Part shown: positions 9,309 through 23,205 of the stretch, one piece after another
Numbering within the stretch: position 1 is the stretch's first letter
How the letters are laid out: the number at the start of each line of letters is the position of its first letter
Assembly: GCA_002269645.1 (NCBI GenBank)
Contig: NIVC01002489.1
Coordinates: 1-26,665, forward strand
From: Macrostomum lignano
Taxonomy: Eukaryota
Length of the DNA: 26,665 nucleotides
Direction: 5' to 3'
Notes under the pieces: generated by a model
Databases searched by the model: none
The model's input: only the letters and a program-made list of their open reading frames with translations
What the model was told of the DNA's origin: nothing
Position numbers and translations under genes: made by a program

Positions 9309-9865
9309 GTTGTTAAAACGAGGTGCCGTCGAAACCGGCGCGGGTCAGTTCCGAAGAACTCTGCTGCAGTTATATTTTGTATTTGATCGAAAGAATTAAA
9401 AATATTTACAAGATTTCGATTTGAATATTTATACGAATATTGAAATTAAAAATATACATATATAAAACTATTTTTCAATATTTTGCAGTATTTTGCACGC
9501 ATTTGGGGATAAAAAAGAGGGGAGGGAAATCCCGCACAAAGAAGGGATCTAATAAAAGCAGGACATCTAAAAAATACGTGCTTGATATTTGAAGGCCTAT
9601 TGAGAGTAAAAGCAAGACATTTAAGTAAAAAAATAGAGATTAAGAATGCAATAGCGCATATTTGAATTTAGTTGTAAAAATAGAATGAATATAGTAAAGG
9701 TGTAAAAAAGCAATTAGTGATATTTGTAGAGCAGTTGGGTAAAAAACACAGTTGGGAAAATTGTAAAAAGAAACGCGAGGAGACATAGAGATTACCTAAT
9801 CAGTCCTAATGACTGATCAACCGATCTCTGTCTCAGGCAGCAAGTTTAGTTTTATTAGTTGCGTT

Positions 9866-12684
9866 TCAGAGCGTGGTCACTTCCGGTTTGGGAGGCTGGT
9901 GCCCGGCCTTACCCTGGGGTGGGATTCCCCTGTTTCTTTCCCGACGCCTCATGGCATCCCAGAGGACATTGAGGACTGGGGTTCGGCCCGGAGCCCGAGG
10001 GGCTTCCGGCTCAATGTGGAAGCTGTGGAGCTTGGCTGCCCTCATCTTGAGCAGCCAAGCCACCCCCAGCTGCTTGACCCTGTCTGCGAGCATCGGCATA
10101 CCTGCCAGCTTGTGCAGGTATTCGATGCTGATGTAGGATGGCACACCATAGCAGATACGGAGAGCCAGGTTTTGGATTTTCTGCAATTTGATTTGGTTAG
10201 TCGCACAAATTTGGCTCAGGATTGGCGCTCCGTAGGTGAGAGCGCTTTCTCCGTATGCCCTGTACAGCATTCTGAGGGTGGTGCTACTCAGCTTAGTCAT
10301 TTTTGCAATTCTGCACAGTGACATTACAATGGCTCTGCTGGTATCTGCCATGTTGTCCACATGTTTGTTCAGGCAGAGGCTCTGGTCAAGGAGGACACCC
10401 AGGAATTTCACCTCCTGACAGTACGGAACCTCAGTGTCCCCCAGATACAGTTTGGGTCGCAAGTCCATGCGCCTAGTGGGTTTGTAGTTGAAAGCGATTG
10501 CTTTGCTTTTACCGGCATTCAGTCTAATGCCTTGTTTACCGCACCAGTCAAAGACTCGTCTGAGGTAGCTTTGAAGGGATGTTCGGAGCCCCGCAAAGGT
10601 GTCTGCTGAGGCCCAGACGGCCATGTCGTCTGCGAATTGACTGCGTTTGACGCTTGAGATGGTGGGAGTCGGCATTGAGCTGACGAAGAGGAGATACAGG
10701 AGAGGACTCAGAATGCCTCCCTGAGGGACGCCAGCCTGGATGGTGTGGGGATCGCTTAGGGCCCCCTCGATTCGAACCTGGATCTGTCTGTCTCGCAGGT
10801 AGTCAGACAGGATTCGCATGAGCATAGGTGGAAAACCATCGGTGAGCATGCTATGCCTGATCTTGTCGTGCCAGGTGGAGTCAAAAGCTGCCTCTGCATC
10901 CAGGAAGACTGCAGCGGACTTTTTAGCTTTGCACTTTGCTACCATGACATCTTGTGCCAGACGGCACAGGTTGTCATACGTGGAGTGAATTTTGCGGTAG
11001 GCGCATTGGTCATCTCCTAGGGTCTTATTATCCTCAAGGTGCTTGGTGAGTCTTTTTGCTATAAGCTTCTCAAACACTTTGCCCAGACATGAGGTCAGGC
11101 TGATTGGTCTGTAGGAGTTGGGGTGTTCGGGCGGTTTGTCCGGCTTGGGGATCATTGTCACCACAGCTTTCTTCCAGGCGCTGGGGAAAATCCCTCGACC
11201 GTAGCAGGCGTTGAAGAGGTTAGTGAGTCTCGTGATTGCCACCCCCTCTAAGCCCAGCTTGAGGACGCAGTTGGGAATCTTGTCCAGCCCGGGTGCTCCA
11301 TCAGGCCTGAGGTGCTCCAGTTCCCACACTGTGTCTGCCACAGAGAATGCAGCATCAAGTGGGTGGGTCTCAATGGGTTCGATTCCCTCAGGAACGGGGT
11401 AGAATGAGGTGAGCTGTGCCACATCGGCCACCTCACGTTTGAGCTGTTCGCATGTGGAAGGGACTGGGCGCATCTTTGAGTCCAGAGTCTCGGCTAGAAG
11501 GTTAGCCTTCTCCAGATCTGTGTGCGCAGTTGTTTGACCCAGGGTGAGGCTGGGGATCGAGGTTGGCTTAAATTTGCCCATCAGCTTTTTAGTGTCATGC
11601 CAGAAATTCTTCACTTTCTTGTTCTTGCTGTTTTCAACAATACTCTCACAGACTTTGGTGAGCTTTCCATTCTGGAAGGAGTTAATTTCTCTCTTTATGC
11701 GATTTGCGAGCTGGTTTGCTTGGGTTTTGAAATTTTGATCCCGTGTGCTGAAGAAGAGGCGTCTGAGTCGTCTGCGCTCTTTGATCAGGTCGAGGATGTA
11801 CTTGGGTAGGGCGTTTTTGGCACCACAGTCTGGTACTGTGGAGTCAATCACGGTGTGAATGGCCTTTGTGATGTGATCCACTTCGGCATTGATTTGGTCA
11901 GCATTTGATAATTTAATATTCTGATCTGAGCTCAAAGCTTCACTGATTTTGAGTCTGAACTCGTCCCAGTTTGTTTTTGAGAAGTTTTTGGGTCTGGGGG
12001 ACCAGCCCATTTCTTCGACTGAATATTGAGCGTGAGGATTATGGTAAGTGGTCACTGCCCAGGTCAGGACCCACCTCAAAGTCCTGCACAAATGGGAGAA
12101 AGTCCTCAGTGGCCAGGGCGAGGTCCAAGACATTCCTAGAAATCAGCCCGTTTTTGGTGGCCAGTCTGGTGAACTGACCGGCTTGATTGAGAATGGTGGC
12201 GAGGTGGGGCCCTCAGACAGCCAGTCGTGCAGCTGGTAGCCAGCCATGTTGTTGCTGCTGTCACCCCCGAGGAAGCGGTGTCTGGCATTGAGGTCACCCA
12301 TGAGCACACTGCGCCTACGGAGAGAAGATTTTTGAGTAGGTTCAGGTTCAGATGATACGGTGCTGGAGACCTGTACACCAGAGCAAGATTGAAGTCAGGA
12401 CCAGAGTTGTCAGACAAGCTCACGGTGCAAGAGATGGCTTCATGGTTGACATTGTCATACTGCAAGCGCACATTTGTGAGTTTGACGCGAGGAGAGTGGG
12501 CAAGGAGAAGCCCGCGTTTGACTTGCGGGGTATCATACCGAATGATGGAGTACCCGGGAATCTGGACAGTGTGACAACTTTTGAGAATGGTCTCAGAGAA
12601 GAGGGCAATGTCTAGCTCCTGACTGACGACCCACTGTGTCAGCTCTCTGATTTTCGGGTTGAATCCCCTGCAGTTTAAATGCAT
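9866..12684 (-). CDS. ORF2 of copy B: APE endonuclease + reverse transcriptase (~940 aa after correcting 4 single-base deletions)
   Basis: APE motifs HLNCRGF, DIALFSET, YRSP, MGDLNARH, LDLALA, SDHL. RT motifs YRPISLTSCLGKVFEK, AVFLDAEAAFDSTWH, GVPQGGILSPLLY, FADD, FLGVLLD. No RNase H or C-terminal CCHC recognised. Apparent frameshifts near 12320, 12200, 12045 and 12000. Confidence 0.95.
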
Positions 12685-12770
12685 AATCTTCAGGGCTGTG
12701 GTTTGATTGTTTGAGTCTACAGTTAACGCACTGAAGTTTCAATTCAAGTCTTGAGTTTAGCTGCCTGAGA

Positions 12771-22200: not shown

Positions 22201-22871
22201 TGTTAATGTGAACTGTAAATTATAGATAATTTTAACTTTTTTTCGTTTTCTACCACGAGACGAGACTGAGGGCCTTTTCATATTGCTTGCTCTGGTTCCA
22301 GAACAAGAACCAATTTGTGAAGTATAACTTTTTGTCTCCATAACTAGAGGGAGATACGTGCTATAAAGTTTTTATTATTGAATGACAGTCGCCAAGAAGA
22401 AAGTGAAAAATTGTGCTAAGTGAGGCTGTTAAGGCAGTCAAATATTAACAGAGTTTAATAGTTATACTGCTGTTTTTCTTGGAATTCCGAACCGATTCTG
22501 GTTCTGGAATTGGTAATATGAAAAGGCCCTGAGACTCTGAGAGTCGCGAGACCATGACTACTGCACGCGGCACGCCGCACAGTCCGTCTAGCAATTTAGG
22601 GATTCCAATCCCGGGATCCCGGGATCCCGGGATTGGGGCCAAAAATCCGGGATTTGAATCCCGGGATTTTTTTGGGAATCGAATCCCGGGATTTTTAATC
22701 CCGGGATTGCAAAAGCACCGGGATTCCGGGATTTTGAATCCCGGGATTTCAACAGCATCGGGATTTCGGGACTATTCAATCCCGGGATTGTAAAATGTCG
22801 GGATTTTGGAATCCCTACTCAAGAGAGGGCCGGCAGTCCATCTTTTTAGCGCTGGCGCGATTTGCAGCCAT
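19229..22871 (-). pseudogene. ORF1 of copy C (AlkB domain ~20845..21387), disrupted after about codon 17 by the MITE
   Basis: ATG at 22871 (MAANRASAKKMDCRPSL), MITE at 21879..22817, then a 596-aa open stretch 19984..21774 holding the intact AlkB domain and a 260-aa stretch 19229..20011 with three zinc knuckles. Confidence 0.92.
21879..22817. mobile_element. Non-autonomous hAT-type DNA transposon (MITE), 939 bp
   Basis: Terminal inverted repeats TAGGGATTCCAA / TTGGAATCCCTA; 8-bp TSD CTCAAGAG at 21871..21878 and 22818..22825. Copy B has a single CTCGAGAG at this site. Many subterminal ATCCCGGGAT palindromes. Confidence 0.9.
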
Positions 22872-23090
22872 ATGGCGTGATTATTTGGGTGCACTCACAC
22901 TAAACTAAACTAGACAACTACTAATGAGACAGGAGGCACACAAAGTGCGCTCGCTGAGAGGGGTGGGGCGACTGCAAGATAAGACTAGGGGTGGGGTAGA
23001 GATAAAAACAAATGTACAGTGGAATGGAAGGCTAACTAAAGTACTTTTAAGAGCTAAGCTAGGCTAGTCTAAACTATTCTATTTCTAATA

Positions 23091-23205
23091 AGCCTTTCTA
23101 GGAAAGGCCTGCAAAAACTAGAGAATTCTCCTAAGAGTATCCCTCCACGGAAATCTTTAGTAAAAGGCGAAAGATTTAATCGTGGAATGAAGAGAAACCA
23201 GAGCT
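23091..23205 (-). ncRNA. U5: Complete chimeric U5 snRNA gene (host 5' half 23159..23205 + element-borne 3' half 23091..23158), ~115 nt
   Basis: AGCTCTGGTTTCTCTTCA...AAATCTTTC-GCCTTTTAC-TAAAGATTTCCGTGGAG carries the invariant U5 loop I and stem Ic. Stem Ib TTTCTCTTCA/TGGAGGGATA, Sm-like AGTTTTTG, 3' hairpin GGCCTTTC-CTA-GAAAGGCT. Ends are approximate. Confidence 0.92.

Follow-up and report, generated by a model that had tools for sequence, protein, structure and literature searches.

How a retrotransposon can enter the same nucleotide of a small nuclear RNA (snRNA) gene again and again is the question raised by a locus in the free-living flatworm Macrostomum lignano. Long interspersed elements (LINEs) that target low-copy snRNA genes present a puzzle, as insertion should ruin a scarce and essential gene together with the element's own target. 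The locus lies on contig NIVC01002489.1 of the PacBio-based assembly GCA_002269645.1; the stretch analyzed, 26,665 nucleotides (nt) long, is referred to below as the window. It contains a U5 snRNA gene followed by a head-to-tail array of retrotransposon copies. We conclude that this array was probably built by serial insertion of a U5-specific retrotransposon without long terminal repeats (non-LTR), with the whole U5 gene rebuilt each time and the oldest copy left last.

We located the repeat units by self-BLAST of the window and by alignment. All features of the array lie on the minus strand, where the U5 promoter and a complete U5 gene come first, then unit C and unit B, and after these a displaced piece of U5 3' sequence and an old relic (Table 1). 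The two units run head to tail (C, 23158..15742; B, 15760..9289) and overlap in a 16-mer, AAAGATTTCCGTGGAG, that corresponds to U5 nt 49-64. Window-wide, the 16-mer occurs in three exact copies, one per junction, against a chance expectation of 0.36, and three copies were reached in none of 100 shuffles. The relic, aligned to the element tail plus a U5 3' part, scores 53, compared with 20 +/- 3.5 (maximum, 43) for shuffled sequences.

A preliminary sequence-only reading of the window had proposed this order with its coordinates, and had recognized the relic at 9127..9213; self-BLAST, alignment, the 16-mer at all three junctions, and the relic's alignment score bear it out on both points. It had further placed a U5 5' half upstream of C and had each insertion restore the surroundings of the cut site. 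The 5' half is present and the site does survive, as the 16-mers at the junctions attest, but the scope of that claim was too narrow: Rfam reports a complete U5 gene upstream of C because C itself opens with a U5 3' half, so that the whole gene is rebuilt and not the cut site only.

The U5 gene at the head of the array matches Rfam model RF00020 over model positions 1-117 (83.2 bits against a threshold of 40; E=3.7e-13), and its invariant loop, CGCCUUUUACU (loop I), is intact in the Rfam alignment. Just past the 16-mer, C and B both open with a U5 3' half (GGATACTC...GAAAGGCT), followed by 67 nt and then by the leader, ATTCCACTGTACA; we refer to everything ahead of the leader as the 5' module, and it is identical in the two units by alignment. 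The element-borne half (GGAUACUC...) has a putative Sm-binding site and a terminal stem-loop. When paired by hand on the Rfam structure with the U5 5' half, the displaced, AGGAAC-type 3' half forms 15 of 15 stem I pairs and the element-borne half forms 13 of 15; the Rfam alignment has two non-canonical pairs in stem I of the U5 with the element-borne half. Free-energy folds of U5 with each of three 3' halves did not discriminate between the halves. The rebuilt U5 gene may be functional.

Three further contigs of the same assembly were obtained by look-ups with ORF1 (open reading frame 1) proteins, and four loci were compared: the window, NIVC01002892.1 (pieces L004, L007, and L008), NIVC01002030.1 (L005), and NIVC01003829.1 (L006). 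NIVC01002892.1 carries a U5 gene, four full units (the first three being u1 to u3), and a terminal U5 remainder. At the head of NIVC01002030.1, the U5 5' half and AAAGATTTCCGTGGTG are followed by a 5'-truncated copy, T (595 bp, with AAA added at its tail), and then by a 16-mer, a module, a full unit, a 16-mer, a module, 383 bp, and an assembly gap, for a length of at least three units. NIVC01003829.1 carries a U5 gene, an internally deleted unit whose tail end is variant, and a full unit, after which come the displaced remainder, relic, and flank of the window; it thus has two units, as does the window. Rfam detects full-length U5 at three array heads, and only one U5 5' half and one promoter are present per array, in keeping with the earlier prediction that only one copy per array adjoins the promoter. 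The 16-mer stands once per junction on L005 to L008 as well, with neighboring copies in the same orientation. Comparison of 300 bp upstream of U5 gives 86% identity for the window with L004, 88% for L005 with L006, and about 53% between the pairs. The four distinct U5 genes share one insertion nucleotide and one orientation, visible at the junction of the element tail with AAAGATTTCC, and the units are 99-99.9% alike across the four loci despite four different upstream flanks. All full-length units of the four loci have the U5 module, and the 5' junction, where GTGGAG meets GGATAC, is constant among them apart from one unit with a 1-nt deletion.

The upstream flanks also point to the putative promoter. 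The GCTTTAYGAAAACGAAKGTTT motif (-77..-57), which resembles a proximal sequence element (PSE), and a TATA-like box (about -30) are kept at equal distance in two otherwise unrelated U5 upstream flanks (about 53% identical). Outside the window, the motifs lie at 9589-9640 of L004 (NIVC01002892.1), 8979-9030 of L005 (NIVC01002030.1), and 1044-1095 of L006 (NIVC01003829.1). This conserved spacing suggests that they act as promoter elements, and they could represent the proximal element of flatworm snRNA genes.

The element is target-specific for U5, though not absolutely so, as a further copy of the family, copy A, sits outside U5: its upstream flank is not U5 and no U5 gene adjoins it, while its 3' end lies beyond the window. 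The leader of copy A is far more diverged than its coding part, which is about 98.4% identical.

A layout in which the snRNA gene is intact upstream and a 3' fragment of it lies downstream has been explained differently elsewhere. For the Utopia arrays in Phytophthora U2 genes, it was ascribed to deletion of the 5' part of the target (PMC4640811). Applied here, native tandem U5 genes would each have lost their 5' part and the spacer on insertion, leaving an intact neighboring U5 upstream, and the layout is the same. However, ahead of every downstream full-length unit the junction is bounded identically and a 5' half is lacking, independent insertions of B and C would require identical deletion end points, and the truncated copy on NIVC01002030.1 shows duplication of the target rather than deletion. 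We consider this explanation very improbable.

On their predicted domains, the units are copies of a Jockey-like non-LTR retrotransposon of the APE (apurinic/apyrimidinic endonuclease) type. The reverse transcriptase (RT) domain PF00078 is found at 126-128 bits in B, C, and L007 (NIVC01002892.1). The APE domain lies N-terminal to it, at residues 19-235 in L007, where ORF2 is intact with 944 codons (PF14529, 44 bits; PF03372, 25 bits), and tblastn finds the region in ORF2 of B and of C as well, where APE and RT are both present in spite of two frameshifts in the latter. An intact ORF1 of 744 codons, with AlkB and CCHC motifs, is carried by L006 (NIVC01003829.1). A repeat check of the unit found neither long terminal repeats nor terminal inverted repeats inside it, and the 3' untranslated region (UTR) closes in ..GTTTTAACAAC, without a poly(A) tail. 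Past the RT, ORF2 has no Cys/His motif and no RNase H, and about 160 residues are without a Pfam match. The named proteins most similar to it, at about 30% identity, are those of jockey and X-element.

Two placements were considered and rejected. Members of the Tx1 group of the L1 clade have a C-terminal Cys/His zinc knuckle in ORF2 and an RT that groups with L1/Tx1; here the knuckle after the RT is missing and the named best matches are jockey and X-element, not L1. On these grounds, the element probably belongs to a clade other than Tx1. Membership in the Utopia/NeSL/R2 assemblage, which uses a restriction-like endonuclease, was rejected on the N-terminal APE domain and the lack of a Pfam match in the residues past the RT. 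Beyond this genome, the three closest relatives of ORF2 (47-60% identity; L001 to L003) have no U5 sequence and lie on short contigs, and are therefore uninformative about the target of the wider family. An exact pattern of tail plus 16-mer gave no matches in the metagenome contigs scanned.

ORF1 contains an AlkB-type 2-oxoglutarate- and Fe(II)-dependent [2OG-Fe(II)] oxygenase domain, an Arg/Gly- and Ala-rich stretch, and three CCHC knuckles. ORF1 stretches with the AlkB domain (PF13532, 78 bits against a threshold of 31) lie at 13534-14667 and 19984-21774 on the minus strand of the window and at 6065-8296 of L006 (NIVC01003829.1). The domain has an intact HxD...H...RxxxxxR motif, with WHSDDE, HQV, and RISLTFR read in translation, its closest solved structure is ALKBH3 (E=1.3e-23), and it is retained in a relative with 56% ORF2 identity (L002, 2-2056). 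A homology search matched ORF1 to M. lignano PAA54533.1 at 100% identity over 54% of the query, whereas two ORFs of the window looked up by exact sequence had no counterpart on record. The domain could possibly clear the RT-blocking lesions 1-methyladenine and 3-methylcytosine (m1A/m3C) from the template. RNA-repair and demethylation domains are known from plant RNA viruses. Among retroelements, AlkB has been reported in an orchid Ty3/Gypsy lineage (PMC9289625). The literature searched yielded no report of AlkB in a LINE ORF1 and no publication on the U5 element described here.

B and C could have entered separately or arisen in place. The same structure would also result if unequal crossing-over or replication slippage between short U5 repeats around a single insertion had produced the pair, followed by divergence; over the shared 1.9 kb, B and C are indeed nearer to each other than to copy A, and u1 to u3 of the four-unit array are near-identical. 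The differences between B and C argue otherwise. There are 23 substitutions in 6464 compared sites, in addition to 11 one-base indels, one two-base indel, and a 939-bp insert found in C only. Eleven of the 15 coding substitutions are synonymous, and outside the last 20 codons of ORF2 all nine are (9/9), far above the neutral expectation matched by mutation class (C/T 0.41, A/T 0.15, A/C 0.22; P of about 6e-5). This excess implies that the differences would have arisen before insertion, in lineages that needed working proteins. Shared polymorphisms over all units number 16 synonymous versus 3 non-synonymous.

Relationships among units point the same way. C differs from units on other contigs by 1.9-2.8 substitutions per kb and from its neighbor B by 3.7 per kb, while the only close relative of B is the unit at the same position on L006 (u2, NIVC01003829.1; 1.4 per kb). 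In-place duplication cannot yield the 5'-truncated head copy or the variant tails of head copies, which are hallmarks of separate target-primed reverse transcription (TPRT) events at the promoter-proximal position, and just 16 bp of homology is available for exchange in the window. We therefore regard duplication in place as improbable, and the sequence comparison supports serial independent insertion of B and C. The sequence-only reading had likewise set real substitutions between B and C against unequal crossing-over, and had held that duplication would leave adjacent copies always as each other's closest relatives; the substitutions are confirmed, and C has closer relatives on other contigs. 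Its expectation of re-insertion upstream of a previous copy is realized at a second locus, by the truncated, 16-mer-flanked head copy on NIVC01002030.1.

If new copies enter next to the promoter, age should rise downstream, as had also been predicted, and the divergence of the units fits this order. In the four-unit array (NIVC01002892.1), u1 to u3 are 0.6-2.5 substitutions per kb apart, whereas the last unit, by far the most divergent, stands 7.6-9 per kb from all others. The last unit has a 151-bp deletion and 35 substitutions found in no other unit, of which 20 are synonymous, 11 are non-synonymous, and 4 are non-coding; this suggests that it stems from an older sublineage and has decayed as well. 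In the window, C falls in a tight young cluster, B belongs to a separate lineage common only to u2 of L006, and the relic is heavily decayed. C would be younger than B on its lineage membership and on the geometry of the array; with copy A as outgroup, there are two B-specific changes and no C-specific change, too few for dating B against C.

Several observations weigh against serial insertion as the whole account. None of the four available loci is a single-copy U5 locus. The head unit on L006, which should be young, is the most aberrant of all, although it lies 1.1 kb from the contig end and may reflect a poor consensus. The near-identical u1 to u3 of NIVC01002892.1 share 1-bp indels, so local duplication or gene conversion may have acted among them. 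Unit B is a mosaic, whose 5' part has 1-bp indels in common with one unit of the four-unit array and whose 3' part matches u2 of L006. L006 (1-18299) has the downstream flank, relic, and unit B of the window at 99.74% identity (window, 3129-18047) but an upstream flank unlike that of the window (23207 onward). Both B and C contain frame-breaking indels, which may be PacBio consensus errors in the assembly or mutations; small indels separate the two at 12 sites (e.g., 14746/21196, 13633/20082, and 12386/18838), some in short homopolymers and some common to other contigs. Lastly, the Rfam matches of the window, taken up to E=10, include no self-cleaving ribozyme.

Mosaic units and mismatched flanks indicate that arrays have exchanged sequence, by gene conversion or ectopically, or that some PacBio contigs are chimeric, and thus recombination or contig chimerism also shapes the arrays. 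Taken further, the 1-bp indels, the mosaic units, and the one contig pair with inconsistent flanks might be read as signs that the tandem structure itself was created when noisy long reads of a repeated element were assembled. That is hardly credible, as the same architecture recurs in four contigs with distinct flanks and individual units have markers of their own (the insert nested in C, the deletion of 151 bp, and the tail variants).

Serial insertion with rebuilding of the gene could proceed as follows. The APE endonuclease would nick the antisense strand of U5 between nt 48 and 49, just past loop I, and element RNA would be reverse transcribed from that nick, in U5 orientation. The second strand would be cut about 16 nt downstream, so that the U5 5' half plus AAAGATTTCCGTGGAG persists upstream and can be cut again. 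A full-length copy would bring nt 65-116, the U5 3' half, together with some U5 3' flank, forming a complete U5 behind the resident promoter. The old 3' part and any earlier copies would be displaced downstream, and repetition would give a head-to-tail array under one promoter, here with the relic entering first, B next, and C last. For full-length units, the 16-mer marks how far the arriving U5 3' part and the displaced one are still the same in sequence.

The simplest source of a full-length template would be a read-through transcript from the U5 promoter, because the unit has the module at its very 5' end; the end of the cDNA would anneal to the U5 5' half of the target, giving a seamless 5' junction. 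Co-transcription with U5 is suggested indirectly by the position of the module at the 5' extremity, by the seamless 5' junctions, and by the single promoter per array. The 5' module/leader junction is the same in all full-length units, the oldest included, which speaks for a module carried in the template RNA.

The module could instead be a target-site duplication of about 95 bp, made by a second-strand cut about 27 nt past the U5 3' end; in that case, unit position 96 would be the first of the element proper, and mismatched modules would be due to gene conversion between array heads. With the 16-mer included, the module and the terminal U5 remainder of NIVC01002892.1 (L008, 16046-16140) agree fully over exactly 95 nt (16-mer, U5 3' half, and 27 nt of flank) and are divergent beyond. 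All four units of that array have the local flank haplotype, the relic too is preceded by a U5 3' half and 29 nt, and copy A exists without a module. A duplication of this length is at odds with the window and L006, where the module (GGATAC...) differs from the displaced remainder (AGGAAC...) straight after the 16-mer, and with the truncated head copy on L005, which has merely 14-16 nt of duplicated target before it. In addition, the 29 nt past the displaced remainder show no significant similarity to the flank past the relic, and we dropped the idea that they are its decayed twin.

We tentatively favor the carried module and consider the duplication less likely; a complete U5 is left upstream under both. 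The carried module possibly goes back to one such event, in which a U5 gene of the NIVC01002892.1 type underwent the duplication of about 95 bp. That the 133-bp head of the unit is a pure 5' transduction, with 67 nt of host flank, was dropped in its simple form, as only the first 27 nt match the native U5 flank. A fuller proposal, which we put forward tentatively and would not rate as high as an even chance, is that the LINE inherits a replacement U5 3' half and uses the U5 promoter, and that each full-length jump leaves a working U5 gene and a reusable site. Such an element would be near-harmless and would gradually swap native U5 3' halves for its own version, while the ALKBH3-like domain of ORF1 would clear methyl lesions from its template. 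Bacterial integrative elements that bring the 3' end of the tRNA gene they enter offer a likeness to the U5 3' half brought by this LINE.

Site-specific LINEs of other genes provide a first comparison. R2 and R1 in 28S ribosomal DNA (rDNA) are co-transcribed with their target, and their precise 5' junction is ascribed to a template RNA that has target sequence at its 5' end; R2 has a restriction-like endonuclease and a self-cleaving ribozyme like that of hepatitis delta virus (HDV), and both elements inactivate the rDNA unit they enter. The U5 element differs in that the window has no ribozyme detected by Rfam and in that its target gene is rebuilt, not inactivated. Among LINEs specific for snRNA genes, Keno and Utopia target U2, and Kojima 2015 (PMC4494074, Fig. 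3 legend) lists a Tx1 family for U5, so that U5 is already a recorded LINE target. Keno and the Tx1 LINEs resemble the present element in being APE-type non-LTR elements inserted at one position of a spliceosomal snRNA gene; the present element differs from them in its ORF2 without a C-terminal Cys/His knuckle, its relatives jockey and X-element (about 30%), its AlkB-bearing ORF1, and the U5 3' half borne by its copies.

Tandem insertion by target-specific transposons is already known, and the U5 array is a variant with regeneration of the whole gene. Utopia, of the NeSL clade, shares with the U5 element an snRNA-gene target, tandem arrays, and a layout of intact gene upstream and fragment downstream: Utopia-1_NVit is occasionally found as a tandem insertion in U2 genes of Nasonia vitripennis, and Phytophthora arrays have an intact U2 upstream and a U2 3' fragment downstream (PMC4640811). 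Utopia has a restriction-like endonuclease after the RT, whereas the present element has an N-terminal APE; unlike the Phytophthora arrays, moreover, the present element shows target duplication directly, and its U5 3' part is unlike the local remainder. Dada-U1 DNA transposons of zebrafish form tandem copies with a single target-site duplication between them, and so are alike in the surviving site and repeated insertion (PMC3706591). Dada elements, however, move by cut-and-paste with a 6-bp duplication, without reverse transcription and without rebuilding of a gene. In U6/L1 chimeric retrocopies (PMC4476161, PMC6789731), snRNA sequence is fused 5' of a LINE in sporadic, dead, scattered copies. 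Such a fusion is one possible origin of the U5 module; unlike in those copies, the snRNA part here is the fixed, inherited 5' end of an autonomous family and stands in register within an snRNA gene.

Other features of the window accompany the array (Table 1). The 939-bp element nested in C is flanked by an 8-bp target duplication, CTCTTGAG, at 22818-22825 and 21871-21878, and splits ORF1 of C after codon 16; it is private to C, missing from B and from the nine other unit copies compared that span the site. It is non-autonomous and hAT-like, with its 8-bp duplication, and is rich in CCCGGGAT palindromes. Upstream of U5, satellite-like arrays occupy 23696-24573 and 25167-26272, with periods of 16 nt and 19 nt (sub-periods of 8-20 nt), and the U5 gene on L004 (NIVC01002892.1) is preceded by arrays resembling these. 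A stretch with a 29-30-nt period runs through a C-rich region at 3393-5505 (3.4-5.5 kb). A dispersed family of 100-150-bp repeats (..TAGAGATTTAGTATATTTAGA..) occurs at 2030-2910 and 7500-9126, flanking the 3-7.5 kb region, and adjoins the relic on its downstream side and copy A on its upstream side.

Table 1. Features of the U5 array and associated elements in the window
Feature	Position	Strand	Description or basis
U5 promoter region (putative)	23232..23283	-	PSE-like motif and TATA-like motif
PSE-like motif GCTTTACGAAAACGAAGGTTT	23283..23263	-	-77..-57
TATA-like motif TTTCTATATAA	23242..23232	-	-36..-26
U5 snRNA gene	23091..23206	-	nt 1-48 (23206..23159) from target; nt 49-64, 16-mer; nt 65-116 (23142..23091), U5 3' half opening unit C
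16-mer AAAGATTTCCGTGGAG, copy 1 (U5 nt 49-64)	23143..23158	-	Exact-match count
Unit C, promoter-proximal copy	15761..23142	-	Self-BLAST, alignment
Unit C, U5-derived 5' module	23026..23142	-	U5 nt 65-116 (23142..23091); 27 nt, identical with a native U5 3' flank (23090..23064); then 38 nt (23063..23026)
Unit C, leader	from 23025	-	
Unit C, ORF1	22871..19229	-	Split by nested insert
Nested 939-bp element in unit C	21879..22817	.	Terminal inverted repeats TAGGGATTCCAA..TTGGAATCCCTA; alignment of B and C
Unit C, ORF2	19168..16360	-	
Unit C, 3' UTR end	at 15761	-	..GTTTTAACAAC
16-mer, copy 2	15745..15760	-	Junction of C tail and B module; exact-match count
Unit B	9309..15744	-	
Unit B, module	15744..15628	-	
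Unit B, leader	from 15627	-	
Unit B, ORF1	15473..12771	-	AlkB and three CCHC knuckles; frameshifted
Unit B, ORF2	12717..9866	-	APE and RT; one frameshift
Unit B, 3' UTR end	at 9309	-	
16-mer, copy 3	9293..9308	-	Junction of B tail and displaced U5 3' part; exact-match count
Displaced U5 3' remainder	9238..9292	-	Different U5 variant (AGGAACATTCAATGAG...CCCCTTCCAAGAAGGGGTAC; AGGAAC...GGGGTAC), after B
Relic	9127..9213	-	About 25-35 nt of element 3' end (..GCAGCAGTGTACCTCATTTTAACAA), then degenerate 16-mer TAATTTCCATGGTGAG, then decayed U5 3' part
Copy A, same element family	1..2001	-	Cut by window edge; starts at leader ATTCCACTGTACA; without U5 module and without about 620 bp including ORF1 start

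For LINEs that live in low-copy snRNA genes, the U5 array suggests a way out of the puzzle: each full-length insertion would leave a complete U5 and an intact cut site upstream, and therefore the cost to the host would be small and the target never exhausted. It also re-opens the reading of the layout with intact U2 upstream of Utopia in oomycetes. The AlkB domain in a LINE ORF1, if confirmed, would add a retroelement case to the known RNA-repair and demethylation domains. Site-specific LINEs that spare their target gene are of practical interest as safe-harbor insertion tools, and, as M. lignano is a transgenic laboratory model, the mechanism proposed here would be directly testable in the organism itself.

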